Assembly (NCBI GenBank): GCA_002269645.1
Contig: NIVC01000001.1
Location: 2,170,001-2,234,000 of the forward strand
Length of the DNA: 64,000 bases
Direction of reading: 5' to 3'
From: Macrostomum lignano
Taxonomy: Eukaryota
The translations under genes were made by a program, and so were the position numbers. Under the pieces are notes generated by a model. The model was not told the DNA's origin and searched no databases. It was given only the letters and a program-made list of their open reading frames with translations. This document shows positions 39,390 to 56,149 of the stretch, piece after piece (within the stretch, counting starts at the first letter, position 1; each line of letters opens with the position of its first letter).

Positions 39390-39430
39390 AAACCGATATT
39401 TCGGCCCAGACTGGGCCTTCGTCAGGGTTT
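39390..39430 (-). ncRNA. Minimal type I hammerhead ribozyme, copy 1
   Basis: Minus-strand RNA reads AAACC CUGACGA A GGCCCAG-U-CUGGGCC GAAA UA UC^GGUUU. Full catalytic core, stem I AAACC/GGUUU, GC-rich stem II, palindromic AUAU stem III. Predicted cleavage between 39395 and 39394. Confidence 0.85.
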
Positions 39431-41007
39431 ATTTATTCGGGTTTAAAAACAAATATATTGGCAGTGAAGTTATTGTAACATAATTTCAATATATATATAT
39501 GCTACTTTTGGGGTGCACTGAGCAGTGTTGAGTAAAGATGTGTACGTATAATTAGTTAAAAACGTGAGTTGAAGCACGCTGATTGGTTAAAGATTGGCAG
39601 CTTAAAGCCTTGCACAAAAAATATTAAAGATGTTAGGTGCTATAGAAAAACAGATTTAGAGCGTAGAAGTGTATGAATAAGCATCTTGAAAAGTTCAACA
39701 AATAAGTTATTTACGCCCGTAGAATTGAGAACAAATATTAAATTAAAACAGAGCACTGAGAACTTTTCAAAAGAAGTGCAAGTAAATAGATGTTATTACA
39801 TAAACAGTAAATAAATTGAGTCGCCAGGCAGGCCACTAGTTGCAGTTGGCGGCGTCTGGTCACAGATCGCCGCCTGCACAGCCCCTGGTCACAGGCGACT
39901 GGGCACTGCAGATCAGTTGAGGCTAGATTATCAGTAGTAGTAGCACTAGTAGTTGCAGTAGTAGCTCGTAGTAGTAGTAATGGAAGTAGTAGTAGTACAA
40001 GTATTAGTAGAGTAGTAGTAGAGCAGTCGTAGGCGTAGTCGTAGTAGAGACGTACTGGTAAGCAGTTATTTGAAGTAGCCAGGCAGGCCACTAGTCGCAG
40101 TTGGCGGCGTCTGGTCACAGATCGCCGCCTGCACAGCCCCTGGTCACAGGCGACTGGGCACTGCAGATCAGTTGAGGCTAGATTATCAGTAGTAGTAGCA
40201 CTAGTAGTTGCAGTAGTAGCTCGTAGTAGTAGTAATGGAAGTAGTAGTAGTACAAGTATTAGTAGAGTAGTAGTAGAGCAGTCGTAGGCGTAGTCGTAGT
40301 AGAGACGTACTGGTAAGCAGTTATTTGAAGTAGCCAGGCAGGCCACTAGTCGCAGTTGGCGGCGTCTGGTCACAGATCGCCGCCTGCACAGCCCCTGGTC
40401 ACAGGCGACTGGGCACTGCAGATCAGTTGAGGCTAGATTATCAGTAGTAGTAGCACTAGTAGTTGCAGTAGTAGCTCGTAGTAGTAGTAATGGAAGTAGT
40501 AGTAGTACAAGTATTAGTAGAGTAGTAGTAGAGCAGTCGTAGGCGTAGTCGTAGTAGAGACGTACTGGTAAGCAGTTATTTGAAGTAGCCAGGCAGGCCA
40601 CTAGTCGCAGTTGGCGGCGTCTGGTCACAGATCGCCGCCTGCACAGCCCCTGGTCACAGGCGACTGGGCACTGCGGATCAGTTGAAGCTAGATTTTCAGT
40701 AGTAGTAGCACTAGTAGTTGCAGTAGTAGTAGTAGTGGTAGTAGAGTAGTAGTAGTACAGTCGTAGTCGTAGCCGTAGTCGTAGTAGTGTCGTGCGTCTT
40801 AAATATTCAGCTGCAGAAATAGTACTCTTGCTTATCCCAAGTAGATTTTTGGCGGAGAATAGCTCGTATACGAAGATATTTTGTTGACAAACATGGCGAG
40901 CCTCAATAATAGTCCGGTCCTGGTACAGATATTCATAAGGCAGTTTGAAACTGCAAACCACGCACTCGGAAGATATTGAAGGTTACCAGTTGTCGAATGT
41001 TCGAAAA

Positions 41008-41048
41008 AAACCGATATTTCGGCCCAGACTGGGCCTTCGTCAGGGTTT
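41008..41048 (-). ncRNA. Minimal type I hammerhead ribozyme, copy 2
   Basis: Same 41-nt motif as copy 1. Confidence 0.85.
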
Positions 41049-52606: not shown

Positions 52607-53662
52607 TTCATAAGGCAGTTTGAAACTGCAAACCACGCACTCGGAAGATATTGAAGGTTACCAGTTGTCGAATGTTCGAAAAAAAACGATATTTCGGCCC
52701 AGACTGGGCCTTCGTCAGGGTTTATTTATTCGGGTTTAAAAACAAATATATTGGCAGTGAAGTTATTGTAACATAATTTCAATATATATATATGCGACTT
52801 TTGGGGGTGCACTGAGCAGTGTTGAGTAAAGATGTGTACGTATAATTAGTTAAAAACGTGAGTTGAAGCACGCTGATTGGTTAAAGATTGGCAGCTTAAA
52901 GCCTTGCACAAAAAATAATAAAGATGTTAGGTGCTATAGAAAAACAGATTTAGAGCGTAGAAGTGTATGAATAAGCATCTTGAAAAGTTCAACAAATAAG
53001 TTATTTACGCCCGTAGAATTGAGAACAAATATTAAATTAAAACAGAGCACTGAGAACTTTTCAAAAAGAAGTGCAAGTAAATAGATGTTAATACATAAAC
53101 AGTAAATAAATTGAGTCGCCAGGCAGGCCACTAGTTGCAGTTGGCGGCGTCTGGTCACAGATCGCCGCCTGCACAGCCCTGGTCACAGGCGACTGGGCAC
53201 TGCAGATCAGTTGAGGCTAGATTATCAGTAGTAGTAGCACTAGTAGTTGCAGTAGTAGCTCGTAGTAGTAGTAATGGAAGTAGTAGTAGTACAAGTATTA
53301 GTAGAGTAGTAGTAGAGCAGTCGTAGGCGTAGTCGTAGTAGAGACGTACTGGTAAGCAGTTATTTGAAGTAGCCAGGCAGGCCACTAGTCGCAGTTGGCG
53401 GCGTCTGGTCACAGATCGCCGCCTGCACAGCCCCTGGTCACAGGCGACTGGGCACTGCAGATCAGTTGAGGCTAGATTATCAGTAGTAGTAGCACTAGTA
53501 GTTGCAGTAGTAGCTCGTAGTAGTAGTAATGGAAGTAGTAGTAGTACAAGTATTAGTAGAGTAGTAGTAGAGCAGTCGTAGGCGTAGTCGTAGTAGAGAC
53601 GTACTGGTAAGCAGTTATTTGAAGTAGCCAGGCAGGCCACTAGTCGCAGTTGGCGGCGTCTG
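52607..53662 (-). mobile_element. Hammerhead-bearing unit 6 (1056 bp), flanked by GATA
   Basis: Same termini as unit 5. Confidence 0.8.
52683..52723 (-). ncRNA. Hammerhead ribozyme copy 6 (stem I variant)
   Basis: As copy 5. Confidence 0.7.
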
Positions 53663-55093
53663 GATAGATAGATAGATAGATAGATAGATAGATAGATAGA
53701 TAGATAGATAGATAGATAGATAGATAGACAGATGATAGATAGATAGACGATAGAGAGAAGATAGATAGATAGATAGATAGATAGAGAGAAGATAGATAGA
53801 TAGATAGAGAGAAGATAGATAGATAGATAGATAGATAGATAGATAGATAGATAGATAGATAGATAGATAGATAGATAGATAGATAGATAGATAGATAGAT
53901 AGATAGATAGATAGATAGATAGATAGATAGATAGATAGATAGATAGATAGATAGATAGATAGATAGATAGATAGATAGATAGATAGATAGATAGATAGAT
54001 AGATAGATAGATAGATAGATAGATAGATAGATAGATAGATAGATAGATAGATAGATAGATAGATAGATAGATAGATAGATAGATAGATAGATAGATAGAG
54101 AGAGAGAAGATAGATAGATAGATAGATAGATAGATAGATAGATAGATAGATAGATAGATAGATAGATAGATAGATAGATAGATAGCTAGATAGATAGATA
54201 GATAGATAGATAGATAGATAGATAGATAGATAGAATAGATAGATAGATAGATAGATAGATAGATAGATAGAAGATAGAGAGAAGATAGATAGATAGATAG
54301 ATAGATAGAGAGAAGATAGATAGATAGATAGATAGATAGATAGATAGATAGATAGATAGATAGATAGATAGATAGATAGATAGATAGATAGATAGATAGA
54401 TAGATAGATAGATAGATAGATAGATAGATAGATAGATAGATAGATAGATAGATAGATAGATAGATAGATAGATAGATAGATAGATAGATAGATAGATAGA
54501 TAGATAGATAGATAGATAGATAGATAGATAGATAGATAGATAGATAGATAGATAGATAGATAGATAGATAGATAGATAGATAGATAGATAGATAGATAGA
54601 TAGATAGATAGATAGATAGATAGATAGATAGATAGATAGATAGATAGATAGATAGATAGATAGATAGATAGATAGATAGATAGATAGATAGATAGATAGA
54701 TAGATAGATAGATAGATAGATAGATAGATAGATAGATAGATAGATAGATAGATAGATAGATAGATAGATAGATAGATAGATAGATAGATAGATAGATAGA
54801 TAGATAGATAGATAGATAGATAGATAGATAGATAGATAGATAGATAGATAGATAGATAGATAGATAGATAGACAGATAGATAGATAGACAGATAGATAGA
54901 TAGATAGATAGACAGATAGATAGATAGACAGATAGATAGATAGACAGATAGATAGATATACAGATGATAGATAGATAGATAGATAGATAGGCAGATAGAT
55001 AGATAGGCAGATAGATAGATAGATAGATAGATAGATAGATAGATAGATAGATAGATAGATAGATAGATAGATAGATAGATAGATAGATAGATA
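53663..55093. repeat. (GATA)n tract with variants, about 1.4 kb
   Basis: Direct reading. Confidence 0.95.
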
Positions 55094-56149
55094 TTCATAA
55101 GGCAGTTTGAAACTGCAAACCACGCACTCGGAAGATATTGAAGGTTACCAGTTGTCGAATGTTCGAAAAAAACGATATTTCGGCCCAGACTGGGCCTTCG
55201 TCAGGGTTTATTTATTCGGGTTTAAAAACAAATATATTGGCAGTGAAGTTATTGTAACATAATTTCAATATATATATATGCGACTTTTGGGGGTGCACTG
55301 AGCAGTGTTGAGTAAAGATGTGTACGTATAATTAGTTAAAAACGTGAGTTGAAGCACGCTGATTGGTTAAAGATTGGCAGCTTAAAGCCTTGCACAAAAA
55401 ATAATAAAGATGTTAGGTGCTATAGAAAAACAGATTTAGAGCGTAGAAGTGTATGAATAAGCATCTTGAAAAGTTCAACAAATAAGTTATTTACGCCCGT
55501 AGAATTGAGAACAAATATTAAATTAAAACAGAGCACTGAGAACTTTTCAAAAAGAAGTGCAAGTAAATAGATGTTAATACATAAACAGTAAATAAATTGA
55601 GTCGCCAGGCAGGCCACTAGTTGCAGTTGGCGGCGTCTGGTCACAGATCGCCGCCTGCACAGCCCCTGGTCACAGGCGACTGGGCACTGCAGATCAGTTG
55701 AGGCTAGATTATCAGTAGTAGTAGCACTAGTAGTTGCAGTAGTAGCTCGTAGTAGTAGTAATGGAAGTAGTAGTAGTACAAGTATTAGTAGAGTAGTAGT
55801 AGAGCAGTCGTAGGCGTAGTCGTAGTAGAGACGTACTGGTAAGCAGTTATTTGAAGTAGCCAGGCAGGCCACTAGTCGCAGTTGGCGGCGTCTGGTCACA
55901 GATCGCCGCCTGCACAGCCCCTGGTCACAGGCGACTGGGCACTGCAGATCAGTTGAGGCTAGATTATCAGTAGTAGTAGCACTAGTAGTTGCAGTAGTAG
56001 CTCGTAGTAGTAGTAATGGAAGTAGTAGTAGTACAAGTATTAGTAGAGTAGTAGTAGAGCAGTCGTAGGCGTAGTCGTAGTAGAGACGTACTGGTAAGCA
56101 GTTATTTGAAGTAGCCAGGCAGGCCACTAGTCGCAGTTGGCGGCGTCTG
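55094..56149 (-). mobile_element. Hammerhead-bearing unit 7 (1056 bp), flanked by GATA
   Basis: Same termini as unit 5. Confidence 0.8.
55169..55209 (-). ncRNA. Hammerhead ribozyme copy 7 (stem I variant)
   Basis: As copy 5. Confidence 0.7.

Follow-up and report, generated by a model that had tools for sequence, protein, structure and literature searches.

A mobile family of hammerhead-bearing repeats in a satellite intron

We analysed 64,000 nucleotides (nt) of Macrostomum lignano DNA (assembly Mlig_3_7, GCA_002269645.1, contig NIVC01000001.1, positions 2,170,001 to 2,234,000 of the forward strand; hereafter the window, numbered from its first letter), in which the (GATA)n-filled intron of a BTB-Kelch gene holds several copies of a repeated unit with a hammerhead ribozyme motif near its 3' end. 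These units probably belong to a young non-autonomous retroelement family of M. lignano with the architecture of Penelope-like elements (PLEs) minus the open reading frame (ORF) for reverse transcriptase (RT) and GIY-YIG endonuclease, a reading to which we assign a probability of about 0.72. The simplest reading is that of a non-autonomous PLE derivative mobilised in trans. The assignment to PLEs is made because the published signature of these elements combines partial tandems, with a truncated copy ahead of full copies, with a terminal hammerhead and a bias towards microsatellites (PMC8557442; also PMC6765202).

The insertion in the window has an empty counterpart. A second contig (NIVC01002563.1, hereafter L001) is collinear with the window at 94–97% identity and carries the same Kelch gene, and its intron contains only 1.34 kb of (GATA)n, from which the element is absent; duplicated blocks of ≥95% identity are known to be extensive in the Mlig_3_7 assembly (PMC5730564). 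When the spurious annotated ORF of the element served as a protein query, nothing outside its own cluster was found. That cluster, at 90% identity, contained two other M. lignano "hypothetical proteins", leading to two loci on other contigs, L002 and L003, that carry the element at 98–99.5% identity. A first-pass annotation of the window had treated the repeated block as a mobile element, and these two further insertion loci show that it does belong to a real mobile family.

At L003, a 5'-truncated unit is followed by six full units of 1619–1876 bp. The array is bordered on the left by (TATC)n and 375 bp of unique DNA, and on the right by (TATC)n and the same 375 bp, so that a direct duplication of 530 bp with 100% identity flanks it (5911–6441 and 18401–18930). 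The 5' junction contains an 8-nt filler, ATGGCTAC, whose TGGCTAC matches the element ~25 nt downstream. As a side observation, the 530-bp duplication, with its ~150 bp of (TATC)n and 375 bp of unique DNA, resembles an unusually long target-site duplication. At L002, a 245-bp truncated copy, ribozyme included, precedes a single full unit, and (TATC)n arrays lie on both sides. The locus holds two such modules whose junctions are identical, the second being a DNA-level duplicate.

At all three independent loci the leading copy is 5'-truncated and full units stand head-to-tail behind it. The truncation points differ: the window's lies inside an internal 255-bp repeat, that of L003 is 10 nt away from the window's point, and that of L002 leaves 245 bp up to the 3' end; those of the window and L003 map to the GC-rich hairpin of the 255-bp repeat. 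The 3' end, ...GAATATCT, is joined to (TATC)n in the same orientation at three of three independent loci. TATCT is also kept at the internal unit junctions, indicating that the terminal UAUCU is encoded by the element. From the predicted hammerhead cut site to the end of the unit there are 86 nt, and in the Anolis PLE Poseidon reverse transcription starts 85–92 nt past the hammerhead cut site, as calculated from PMC11167929.

A minimal type I hammerhead motif in every copy

The 41-mer AAACCCTGACGAAGGCCCAGTCTGGGCCGAAATATCGGTTT is present on the minus strand at all seven positions given by the first-pass annotation, and had no match in 100 dinucleotide shuffles. Four copies are exact: copy 1 (39390..39430), in which cleavage is predicted after C17 at 39395 and before G1.1 at 39394; copy 2 (41008..41048), in which C17, at 41013, precedes the unit 3' end at 40927 by 86 nt; copy 3 (42373..42413); and copy 4 (45488..45528). 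Copies 5 (48863..48903), 6 (52683..52723) and 7 (55169..55209), also on the minus strand, carry a G1.2-to-U change, reading CGTTTT and ending in ...AUAUCGUUUU, and the second pair of helix I becomes a C.U mismatch. A GGUUU in every copy, as had been proposed, thus holds exactly for copies 1–4 and not for copies 5–7. The copy-to-copy distances are as previously given (1618, 1365, 3115, 3375, 3820 and 2486 nt), and the hammerhead core, CUGACGA / GAAA / U-C, is likewise complete in seven of seven copies.

Taken as a type I hammerhead, the motif comprises a 5-bp helix I (AAACC/GGUUU), the core C3-U4-G5-A6-C7-G8-A9, and a 6-bp helix II (GGCCCA/UGGGCC) closed by a GUC loop. One unpaired A stands between A9 and G10.1 (CUGACGA-A-GGCCC), and the G10.1-C11.1 pair is present. 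Helix II is followed by G12-A13-A14, A15.1-U15.2-A16.2-U16.1 and C17, after which cleavage is predicted. Loop 3 is absent, and 15.2/16.2 are palindromic (UA) within the segment AUAU (GAAA-UA-UC). RNAfold predicts helix I (AAACC/GGUUU, extendable) together with helix II.

We searched the window with a structural descriptor of the minimal hammerhead (helix I of at least 4 bp, CUGANGA, 0–1 nt, helix II of at least 4 bp, GAAA, paired 15.2/16.2, UH). It matched at these sites only and on the minus strand only, again in agreement with the first-pass annotation, and did not match in any of 30 block shuffles or 400 dinucleotide-preserving block shuffles of the window. The empirical p is < ~0.003 per window, with the seven copies counted as one independent occurrence because they duplicate one another. 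Scanned by exact 31-mer, neither JGI metagenome contigs, a collection to which the host does not belong, nor IMG/VR viral contigs yielded a match.

Minimal hammerheads were defined in the flanking repeats of PLEs, and Schistosoma mansoni, a flatworm, has thousands of them (Cervera & de la Pena 2014, PMC4209133). They lack helix III and loop 3, have a helix II of 6–8 bp and a helix I of 4–5 bp, and show an unpaired nucleotide at A9/10.1, a conserved G10.1-C11.1 pair and palindromic 15.2/16.2, the last items lying outside the search descriptor of those authors (PMC4209133). Measured against that list, the motif has all four PLE hallmarks that our descriptor leaves out. The first-pass view of a minimal, dimer-dependent type I hammerhead of the kind found in PLEs is accordingly well founded, since every published peculiarity of the class is present (PMC4209133). 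With fairly high confidence we take the motif to be a homologue of the PLE minimal hammerheads within a PLE-type element.

Anatomy of the unit and of the array

Full units are 1.33–1.88 kb long, have no ORF and carry the ribozyme near the 3' end. On the minus strand their order is a head of ~170 nt beginning GTACC(C)AGGACCGG, the 255-bp repeats, an AT-rich block of ~450 nt, the hammerhead and an 86-nt tail. The tail ends in the sequence given above, its termini being recorded also as ...GAAUAUCU and ...GCCTTATGAATATCT, and joins the next unit or (ATCT)n directly. The number of 255-bp repeats per full unit ranges from two to four, plus a fraction, and differs between neighbours; the repeat is rich in (ACT)n-like triplets and contains the GC-rich hairpin GGCGGCG..CGCCGCC. 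The repeat length is also a multiple of 3, and one frame is open (window 39819–46469, and the L002 and L003 units).

Four units, all on the minus strand, form the array of the window. U1 (39306..40926) is full length, has three and a fraction copies of the 255-bp repeat, and its 3' end merges into (ATCT)n. U2 (40927..42291) is a full-length unit of 1365 bp with two and a fraction copies, and U3 (42292..45406) is full length, measuring ~1876 bp without an inserted miniature inverted-repeat transposable element (MITE). U4 (45407..46468) is the leading copy, 5'-truncated in the 255-bp repeat where TATC meets CAGACGCCGCC. The MITE in U3 is hAT-like and 1231 bp long (43558..44788, no strand assigned). 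Its terminal inverted repeats are 12 bp long (CAGTGTTGGGCA), and a target-site duplication of 8 bp (CTTACCAG) flanks it at 43550–43557 and 44789–44796; its insertion into one unit accounts for the 3115-nt spacing. The MITE contains many subterminal GTAACTT/AAGTTAC repeats. BLAST against the rest of the window and L001 detected no further MITE or unit fragments. A DNA transposon as carrier of the hammerheads was rejected, as the array has no inverted repeats.

Two CCAAT motifs and a TATATATATA run lie ~60–150 nt upstream of each ribozyme (39440–39600, minus strand, and equivalents), the 5' strand of helix I overlaps an AAUAAA, and its 3' strand is formed by a T7–T10 run. Promoter or 3'-processing signals are conceivable here; being simple motifs of an AT-rich sequence, however, these are given no weight.

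Local copies arising by duplication with the satellite

The seven hammerheads had been taken for one tandem series. Only the four units at 39306–46468, however, form a true head-to-tail array, and the three copies further downstream are DNA-level duplicates. These solo copies, S1 (48782..49843), S2 (52602..53662) and S3 (55089..56149), all on the minus strand, have the same 5' truncation as U4, to the exact point, and were duplicated together with flanking satellite. They differ from U4 by the same four substitutions, the helix I change included, and the order of satellite variants is identical on both sides of U4, S1, S2 and S3. To the right of each truncated copy the satellite reads (GATA)16 GACAGAT (GATA)3 GACGATAGAGAGAA ..., and to the left of each solo copy it reads ... 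TACAGAT (GATA)6 GGCA (GATA)3 GGCA (GATA)21. The common truncation, substitutions and satellite patterns therefore indicate that S1–S3 arose by duplication at the DNA level, through unequal exchange, and not by separate insertions. It follows that the "monomers" with kilobases of (UAUC)n, once proposed as ribozyme products, are instead by-products of satellite duplication.

The history of the locus thus began with one antisense insertion into the (GATA)n intron of the BTB-Kelch gene. Unequal exchange in the satellite afterwards copied the truncated unit three more times, bringing the intron to ~29 kb, and the hAT-like MITE entered one unit later.

Transcription and coding content

Four transcript-derived gene models lie on the sense strand of the element, two in the window (P0022, 41480..42301, and a second at 45739..46698, both on the minus strand) and one each at L002 and L003. 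The GenBank models of this assembly were derived from RNA-seq transcript assemblies, and those overlapping annotated repeats were removed (PMC5730564). The models are thus indirect evidence for sense transcription, and indicate that the family seems to be missing from the repeat library of the annotation. In GenBank the open frame of the 255-bp repeat appears under the label "hypothetical proteins" (P0022, PAA86640.1, PAA62220.1).

The units contain no ORF beyond low-complexity reading frames, in keeping with the first-pass statement that the element lacks an RT or GIY-YIG ORF and is non-autonomous. No GIY..YIG motif was found in the six frames of the window, whose RTs belong to Ty3/gypsy and BEL/Pao. 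A tRNA scan detected no tRNA-like or RNA polymerase III (Pol III) features in the element.

Evidence limiting the PLE reading and ribozyme function

Several results weigh against a PLE-type element with a working ribozyme. The Rfam hammerhead models, which the first-pass annotation had put forward as a check, gave no match at the gathering threshold in the whole window, nor at E ≤ 10 in 18 kb or even in 101 nt, and the scans returned only chance sRNA, riboswitch and XIST matches. We do not take this as counter-proof of the motif, because the models expect helix III, which is absent in the monomer; a missing match is what is expected if the models need that helix. Published PLE minimal hammerheads cleave poorly in vitro (PMC4209133). 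In the sole PLE reconstituted in vitro, ribozyme mutants left insertion unaffected (PMC11167929), and the ribozyme of that element needed the element's own protein (PMC11167929). For Anolis Poseidon, sense reads showed no ends at the cleavage bond (PMC11167929). The 18 unit ends from the three loci are near-identical, and within the ribozyme they vary only by G1.2-to-U and by the loss of 1 nt from helix II. Ends so alike show no covariation, nor any sign that the ribozyme is under selection; the helix I mismatch in three copies and the helix II deletion in one amount to about the background rate.

For minimal hammerheads a dimeric active form has been proposed, in which the AUAU segments of two molecules pair to give a helix III of 4 bp (PMC4209133). 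Helix III is absent in the monomer here as well, and is conceivable only in trans, as a 4-bp AUAU helix of four A-U pairs. By nearest-neighbour calculation, forcing the AUAU trans-helix costs 4.4 kcal/mol relative to two free monomers, so that the helix adds no net stability, a further point on the negative side, and RNAcofold of two ribozyme RNAs prefers an extended duplex. As modelled, thermodynamics neither supports nor excludes the dimer, and activity cannot be argued from it. At the level of the element, we recognised no PLE "tail" of 30–40 bp, only the 8-nt filler at the L003 5' junction, and the strand of the gene models may partly reflect ORF calling and multi-mapping reads. Finally, no RT or GIY-YIG ORF was found in the window (ORFs, Pfam, regex) or in ~10 kb of L002 and L003 (ORF lists); the PLE partner is therefore deduced from architecture only. 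On balance, our confidence that the ribozyme is functional is moderate.

Proposed mechanism and alternative readings

In the mechanism that we propose for a non-autonomous PLE derivative, a promoter within an upstream unit would drive a sense transcript that spans several units. The (GATA)n DNA would be nicked by a reverse transcriptase/endonuclease that a PLE provides in trans, and the nicked ...GATA-3' end could pair with the terminal UAUCU of the element and prime reverse transcription. Synthesis of cDNA would proceed back through one or more units and would often abort, as it may have done twice at the GC-rich hairpin of the 255-bp repeat, and the outcome would be a 5'-truncated leading copy followed by full units, the pseudo-long terminal repeat (pLTR) arrangement of PLEs. 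The hammerheads, having no helix III, would cut only when two copies pair through AUAU, or with the help of protein, and would trim multimeric RNA to unit length. The proposed pairing of UAUCU with nicked microsatellite differs from Poseidon, in which initiation is internal and non-homologous. A bolder version, in which an active, orientation-specific (GATA)n-homing PLE-type element is UAUCU-primed, forms its arrays by rolling-circle copying of hammerhead-processed circular RNA (circRNA), and seeds satellite expansion by its insertions (from 1.3 to 29 kb), seems to us quite unlikely.

Head-to-tail arrays with a fixed 3' end and variable 5' truncation are also what rolling-circle cDNA predicts. 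A strict retrozyme would have its units cut by the hammerheads and ligated to circular RNAs, whose rolling-circle reverse transcription would generate tandem arrays, and five of the six L003 units are indeed equal in length (1620 ± 1 bp). The concept has been published for animal hammerhead repeats and tied to PLE pLTRs (PMC7229834; bioRxiv 10.64898/2026.07.22.740005). The units here measure 1.33–1.88 kb, however, against 150–450 bp (at most 972 bp) in described animal retrozymes, and their ribozyme is of the minimal PLE type, not the efficiently cleaving canonical type with loop–loop contacts. Nor is the monomer RNA highly self-paired: the minimum free energy of the 1365-nt monomer has a z of −2.7 against 40 shuffles, and the fold is not rod-like. 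A viroid-like rod was rejected on the same result, the whole-monomer fold being only modestly more structured than shuffles. The units of the window also vary in the number of 255-bp repeats (~1876, 1365 and 1621 bp), unlike the product of a single circle, although later slippage of the repeat could equally explain this variation. What survives of the retrozyme label given in the first-pass annotation is the set of ORF-less, head-to-tail type I hammerhead repeats; the size, 3–10 times larger, the minimal hammerhead and the modest structure do not fit it, and we consider a strict retrozyme unlikely.

Two further explanations set aside either the PLE machinery or the ribozyme. Microhomology of the 3' end to a microsatellite, 5' truncation and target duplications are also typical of target-primed reverse transcription by non-LTR retrotransposons, and flatworm elements resembling short interspersed nuclear elements (SINEs) with hammerheads are known (PMC6765202). 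The element could thus be SINE-like and dependent on a long interspersed nuclear element (LINE), being moved by a (GATA)n-targeting non-LTR retrotransposon and carrying its hammerhead incidentally, as Sm-alpha does. It has no tRNA-like or Pol III features, though, and the T7–T10 runs in helix I would terminate Pol III; its ribozyme is the minimal PLE/Terminon variant and not the canonical Sm-alpha type (PMC4209133, PMC7229834), and a truncated copy with full units at three of three loci is a PLE hallmark that would be unusual for LINE-driven SINEs. We find this origin improbable, and a Pol III SINE was rejected on the negative tRNA scan. It is more improbable still that the ribozyme has no function and is a chance or decayed hammerhead-like motif in a complex repeat whose spread is due to nothing but DNA-level duplication inside satellites. 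Such duplication does account for many of the local copies (in the window, and in the identical L002 junctions), covariation and Rfam matches are lacking, and helix mutations are tolerated in 4 of 18 copies. This explanation is countered by the absence of descriptor matches in 400 shuffles, joined to four PLE-specific features outside the descriptor, and by three independent insertions with differing 5' truncations, an empty homologous site and the 530-bp target duplication, which show retrotransposition beside the DNA-level duplication.

Host gene, satellite and neighbouring sequence

The satellite region sits between Kelch exons and the ribozymes are on the opposite strand, confirming the first-pass placement of the element as intronic and antisense to the kelch gene. 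The (GATA)n region (31096–60151, ~29 kb) is the last intron of the third BTB-Kelch paralog, whose exons upstream of the satellite intron lie at 29537..31092 (+) and whose last Kelch exon, at ~60300–60678 (+), is identified by homology to 21068–21526 of the neighbouring paralog. The BTB-BACK-Kelch ORF of the window is 83–100% identical to M. lignano proteins. The three BTB-BACK-Kelch paralogs are in tandem on the plus strand (14015–16700; 19319–21526; 29537–31092 with ~60300–60678). The last intron measures ~270 bp in the second paralog and ~29 kb in the third, where its length is due to the satellite and the element. A short tandem repeat with a period of ~27–54 nt, open in several frames, occupies 15730–16250 in an intron of the first paralog.

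On the 3' side of the element array the satellite is nearly pure (31096..39310, +), with runs of 499, 474 and 722 units. The remaining blocks (46469–48785, 49844–52605, 53663–55092 and 56150–60151, +) share a higher-order variant pattern beside each truncated unit; across 46469–60151 the satellite is non-uniform, with GACA, GGCA, TACAGAT and GAGAGAA variant blocks recurring in that pattern.

Downstream of the Kelch gene there are further satellites, with repeats of 30 bp (GAGAGAAAACGGGGATGGAGAAAGGGGGTA), 10 bp (AGAGCGGGAG) and 26 bp (ATTCCTCGAGTGCCAAAATCAATATA), at 60656–60922 and 61458–63575 in the window and at 13268–13960, 14632–14985 and 15210–24222 in L001. Of these, the 26-bp repeat extends over 9 kb or more in L001 and over only ~150 bp in the window (61913–62067). 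A BEL/Pao retrotransposon (~24161–29282) with an intact 1602-aa gag-pol ORF (24496–29304, +; Peptidase_A17, RVT_1, DUF1759) is absent from L001 and is thus a recent or polymorphic insertion between two Kelch paralogs. A Ty3/gypsy pol fragment (10950–13453, −) consists of an ORF with RT and RNase H and an overlapping ORF in another frame with RNase H and integrase (frameshift). The window also contains an usherin/laminin-like gene (22–7311, −) with long exons, few introns, FN3-like and LamG-like regions, and nine laminin-EGF domains in one 563-aa ORF.

Significance of the locus

That animals, including flatworms, have minimal hammerheads in abundance, both in PLEs and in their derivatives without an ORF, is already established, and the present family leaves that picture unchanged. 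Its value is that of a clean example. With a very young family, three independent insertions and one empty site, allelic or homeologous, the marks left by integration can be read: a constant 3' end that shares microhomology with (GATA)n, 5' ends truncated at a hairpin, a target duplication of 530 bp without mismatch, and a truncated copy with full units. It also illustrates that an insertion co-amplified with its satellite can inflate an intron ~20-fold. Homing to (GATA)n with 3' microhomology, the very long perfect target duplication, the internal variable number tandem repeat (VNTR) and the co-amplification with satellite are its points of local interest. The models P0022, P0023 and P0024 ("hypothetical proteins") are pieces of the element and should be flagged as transposon-derived. 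M. lignano is tractable for transgenesis, and the element could therefore be used to ask whether PLE hammerheads cleave in vivo and matter for retrotransposition.

Comparison with known hammerhead elements

The closest likeness is to the PLE minimal hammerheads (PMC4209133), for example those in the Cercyon PLEs of S. mansoni, which have the same core, helix lengths, loss of loop 3 and predicted dimeric form, and likewise lie near the 3' end of tandem units. In those elements an RT/GIY-YIG ORF lies between the repeats, whereas here there is none; their families are highly variable (D. virilis excepted), whereas the copies here are almost invariant. An autonomous PLE has a single ORF for a telomerase-like RT and a GIY-YIG endonuclease; the carrier described here, having no ORF, is not one. 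Canonical endonuclease-positive (EN+) PLEs (Penelope/Poseidon, Neptune; PMC8557442, PMC11167929) show the same tandems of truncated before full copies, a hammerhead in the terminal region and microsatellite or AT-rich targets, but are ~3–4 kb long with an ORF, compared with 1.3–1.9 kb without one. Their targets are (TA)n or AT-rich DNA and not (GATA)n. The terminal UAUCU is homologous to the target here, while Poseidon initiates at a site non-homologous to the nicked DNA, and the internal 255-bp VNTR sets the element apart from canonical EN+ PLEs, whose 30–40 bp tail, an optional feature, was not recognised here.

Animal non-LTR retrozymes (Cervera & de la Pena 2020, PMC7229834) are also ORF-less head-to-tail repeats with type I hammerheads, and have been proposed to derive from PLE pLTRs and to be mobilised in trans (PMC7229834; Li, Clavereau & Pollet 2026 preprint). 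They differ in having monomers of 150–450 bp (consensus 51–972 bp), canonical hammerheads with loop 1–loop 2 contacts, and highly self-paired circRNAs. The schistosome Sm-alpha/Sj-alpha SINE-like elements and W-element satellites (PMC6765202, PMC8490949) are flatworm satellite-like repeats with hammerheads as well; they, however, combine a canonical, efficiently cleaving hammerhead and a Pol III-type promoter in units of ~335 nt, whereas the element described here has neither and its unit exceeds 1.3 kb. In the literature searched we found no report linking Macrostomum with hammerheads, and papers naming both M. lignano and Penelope seem, from their titles and abstracts, to deal with other matters. 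The element is thus a new family of an already known kind and not a new kind of system.

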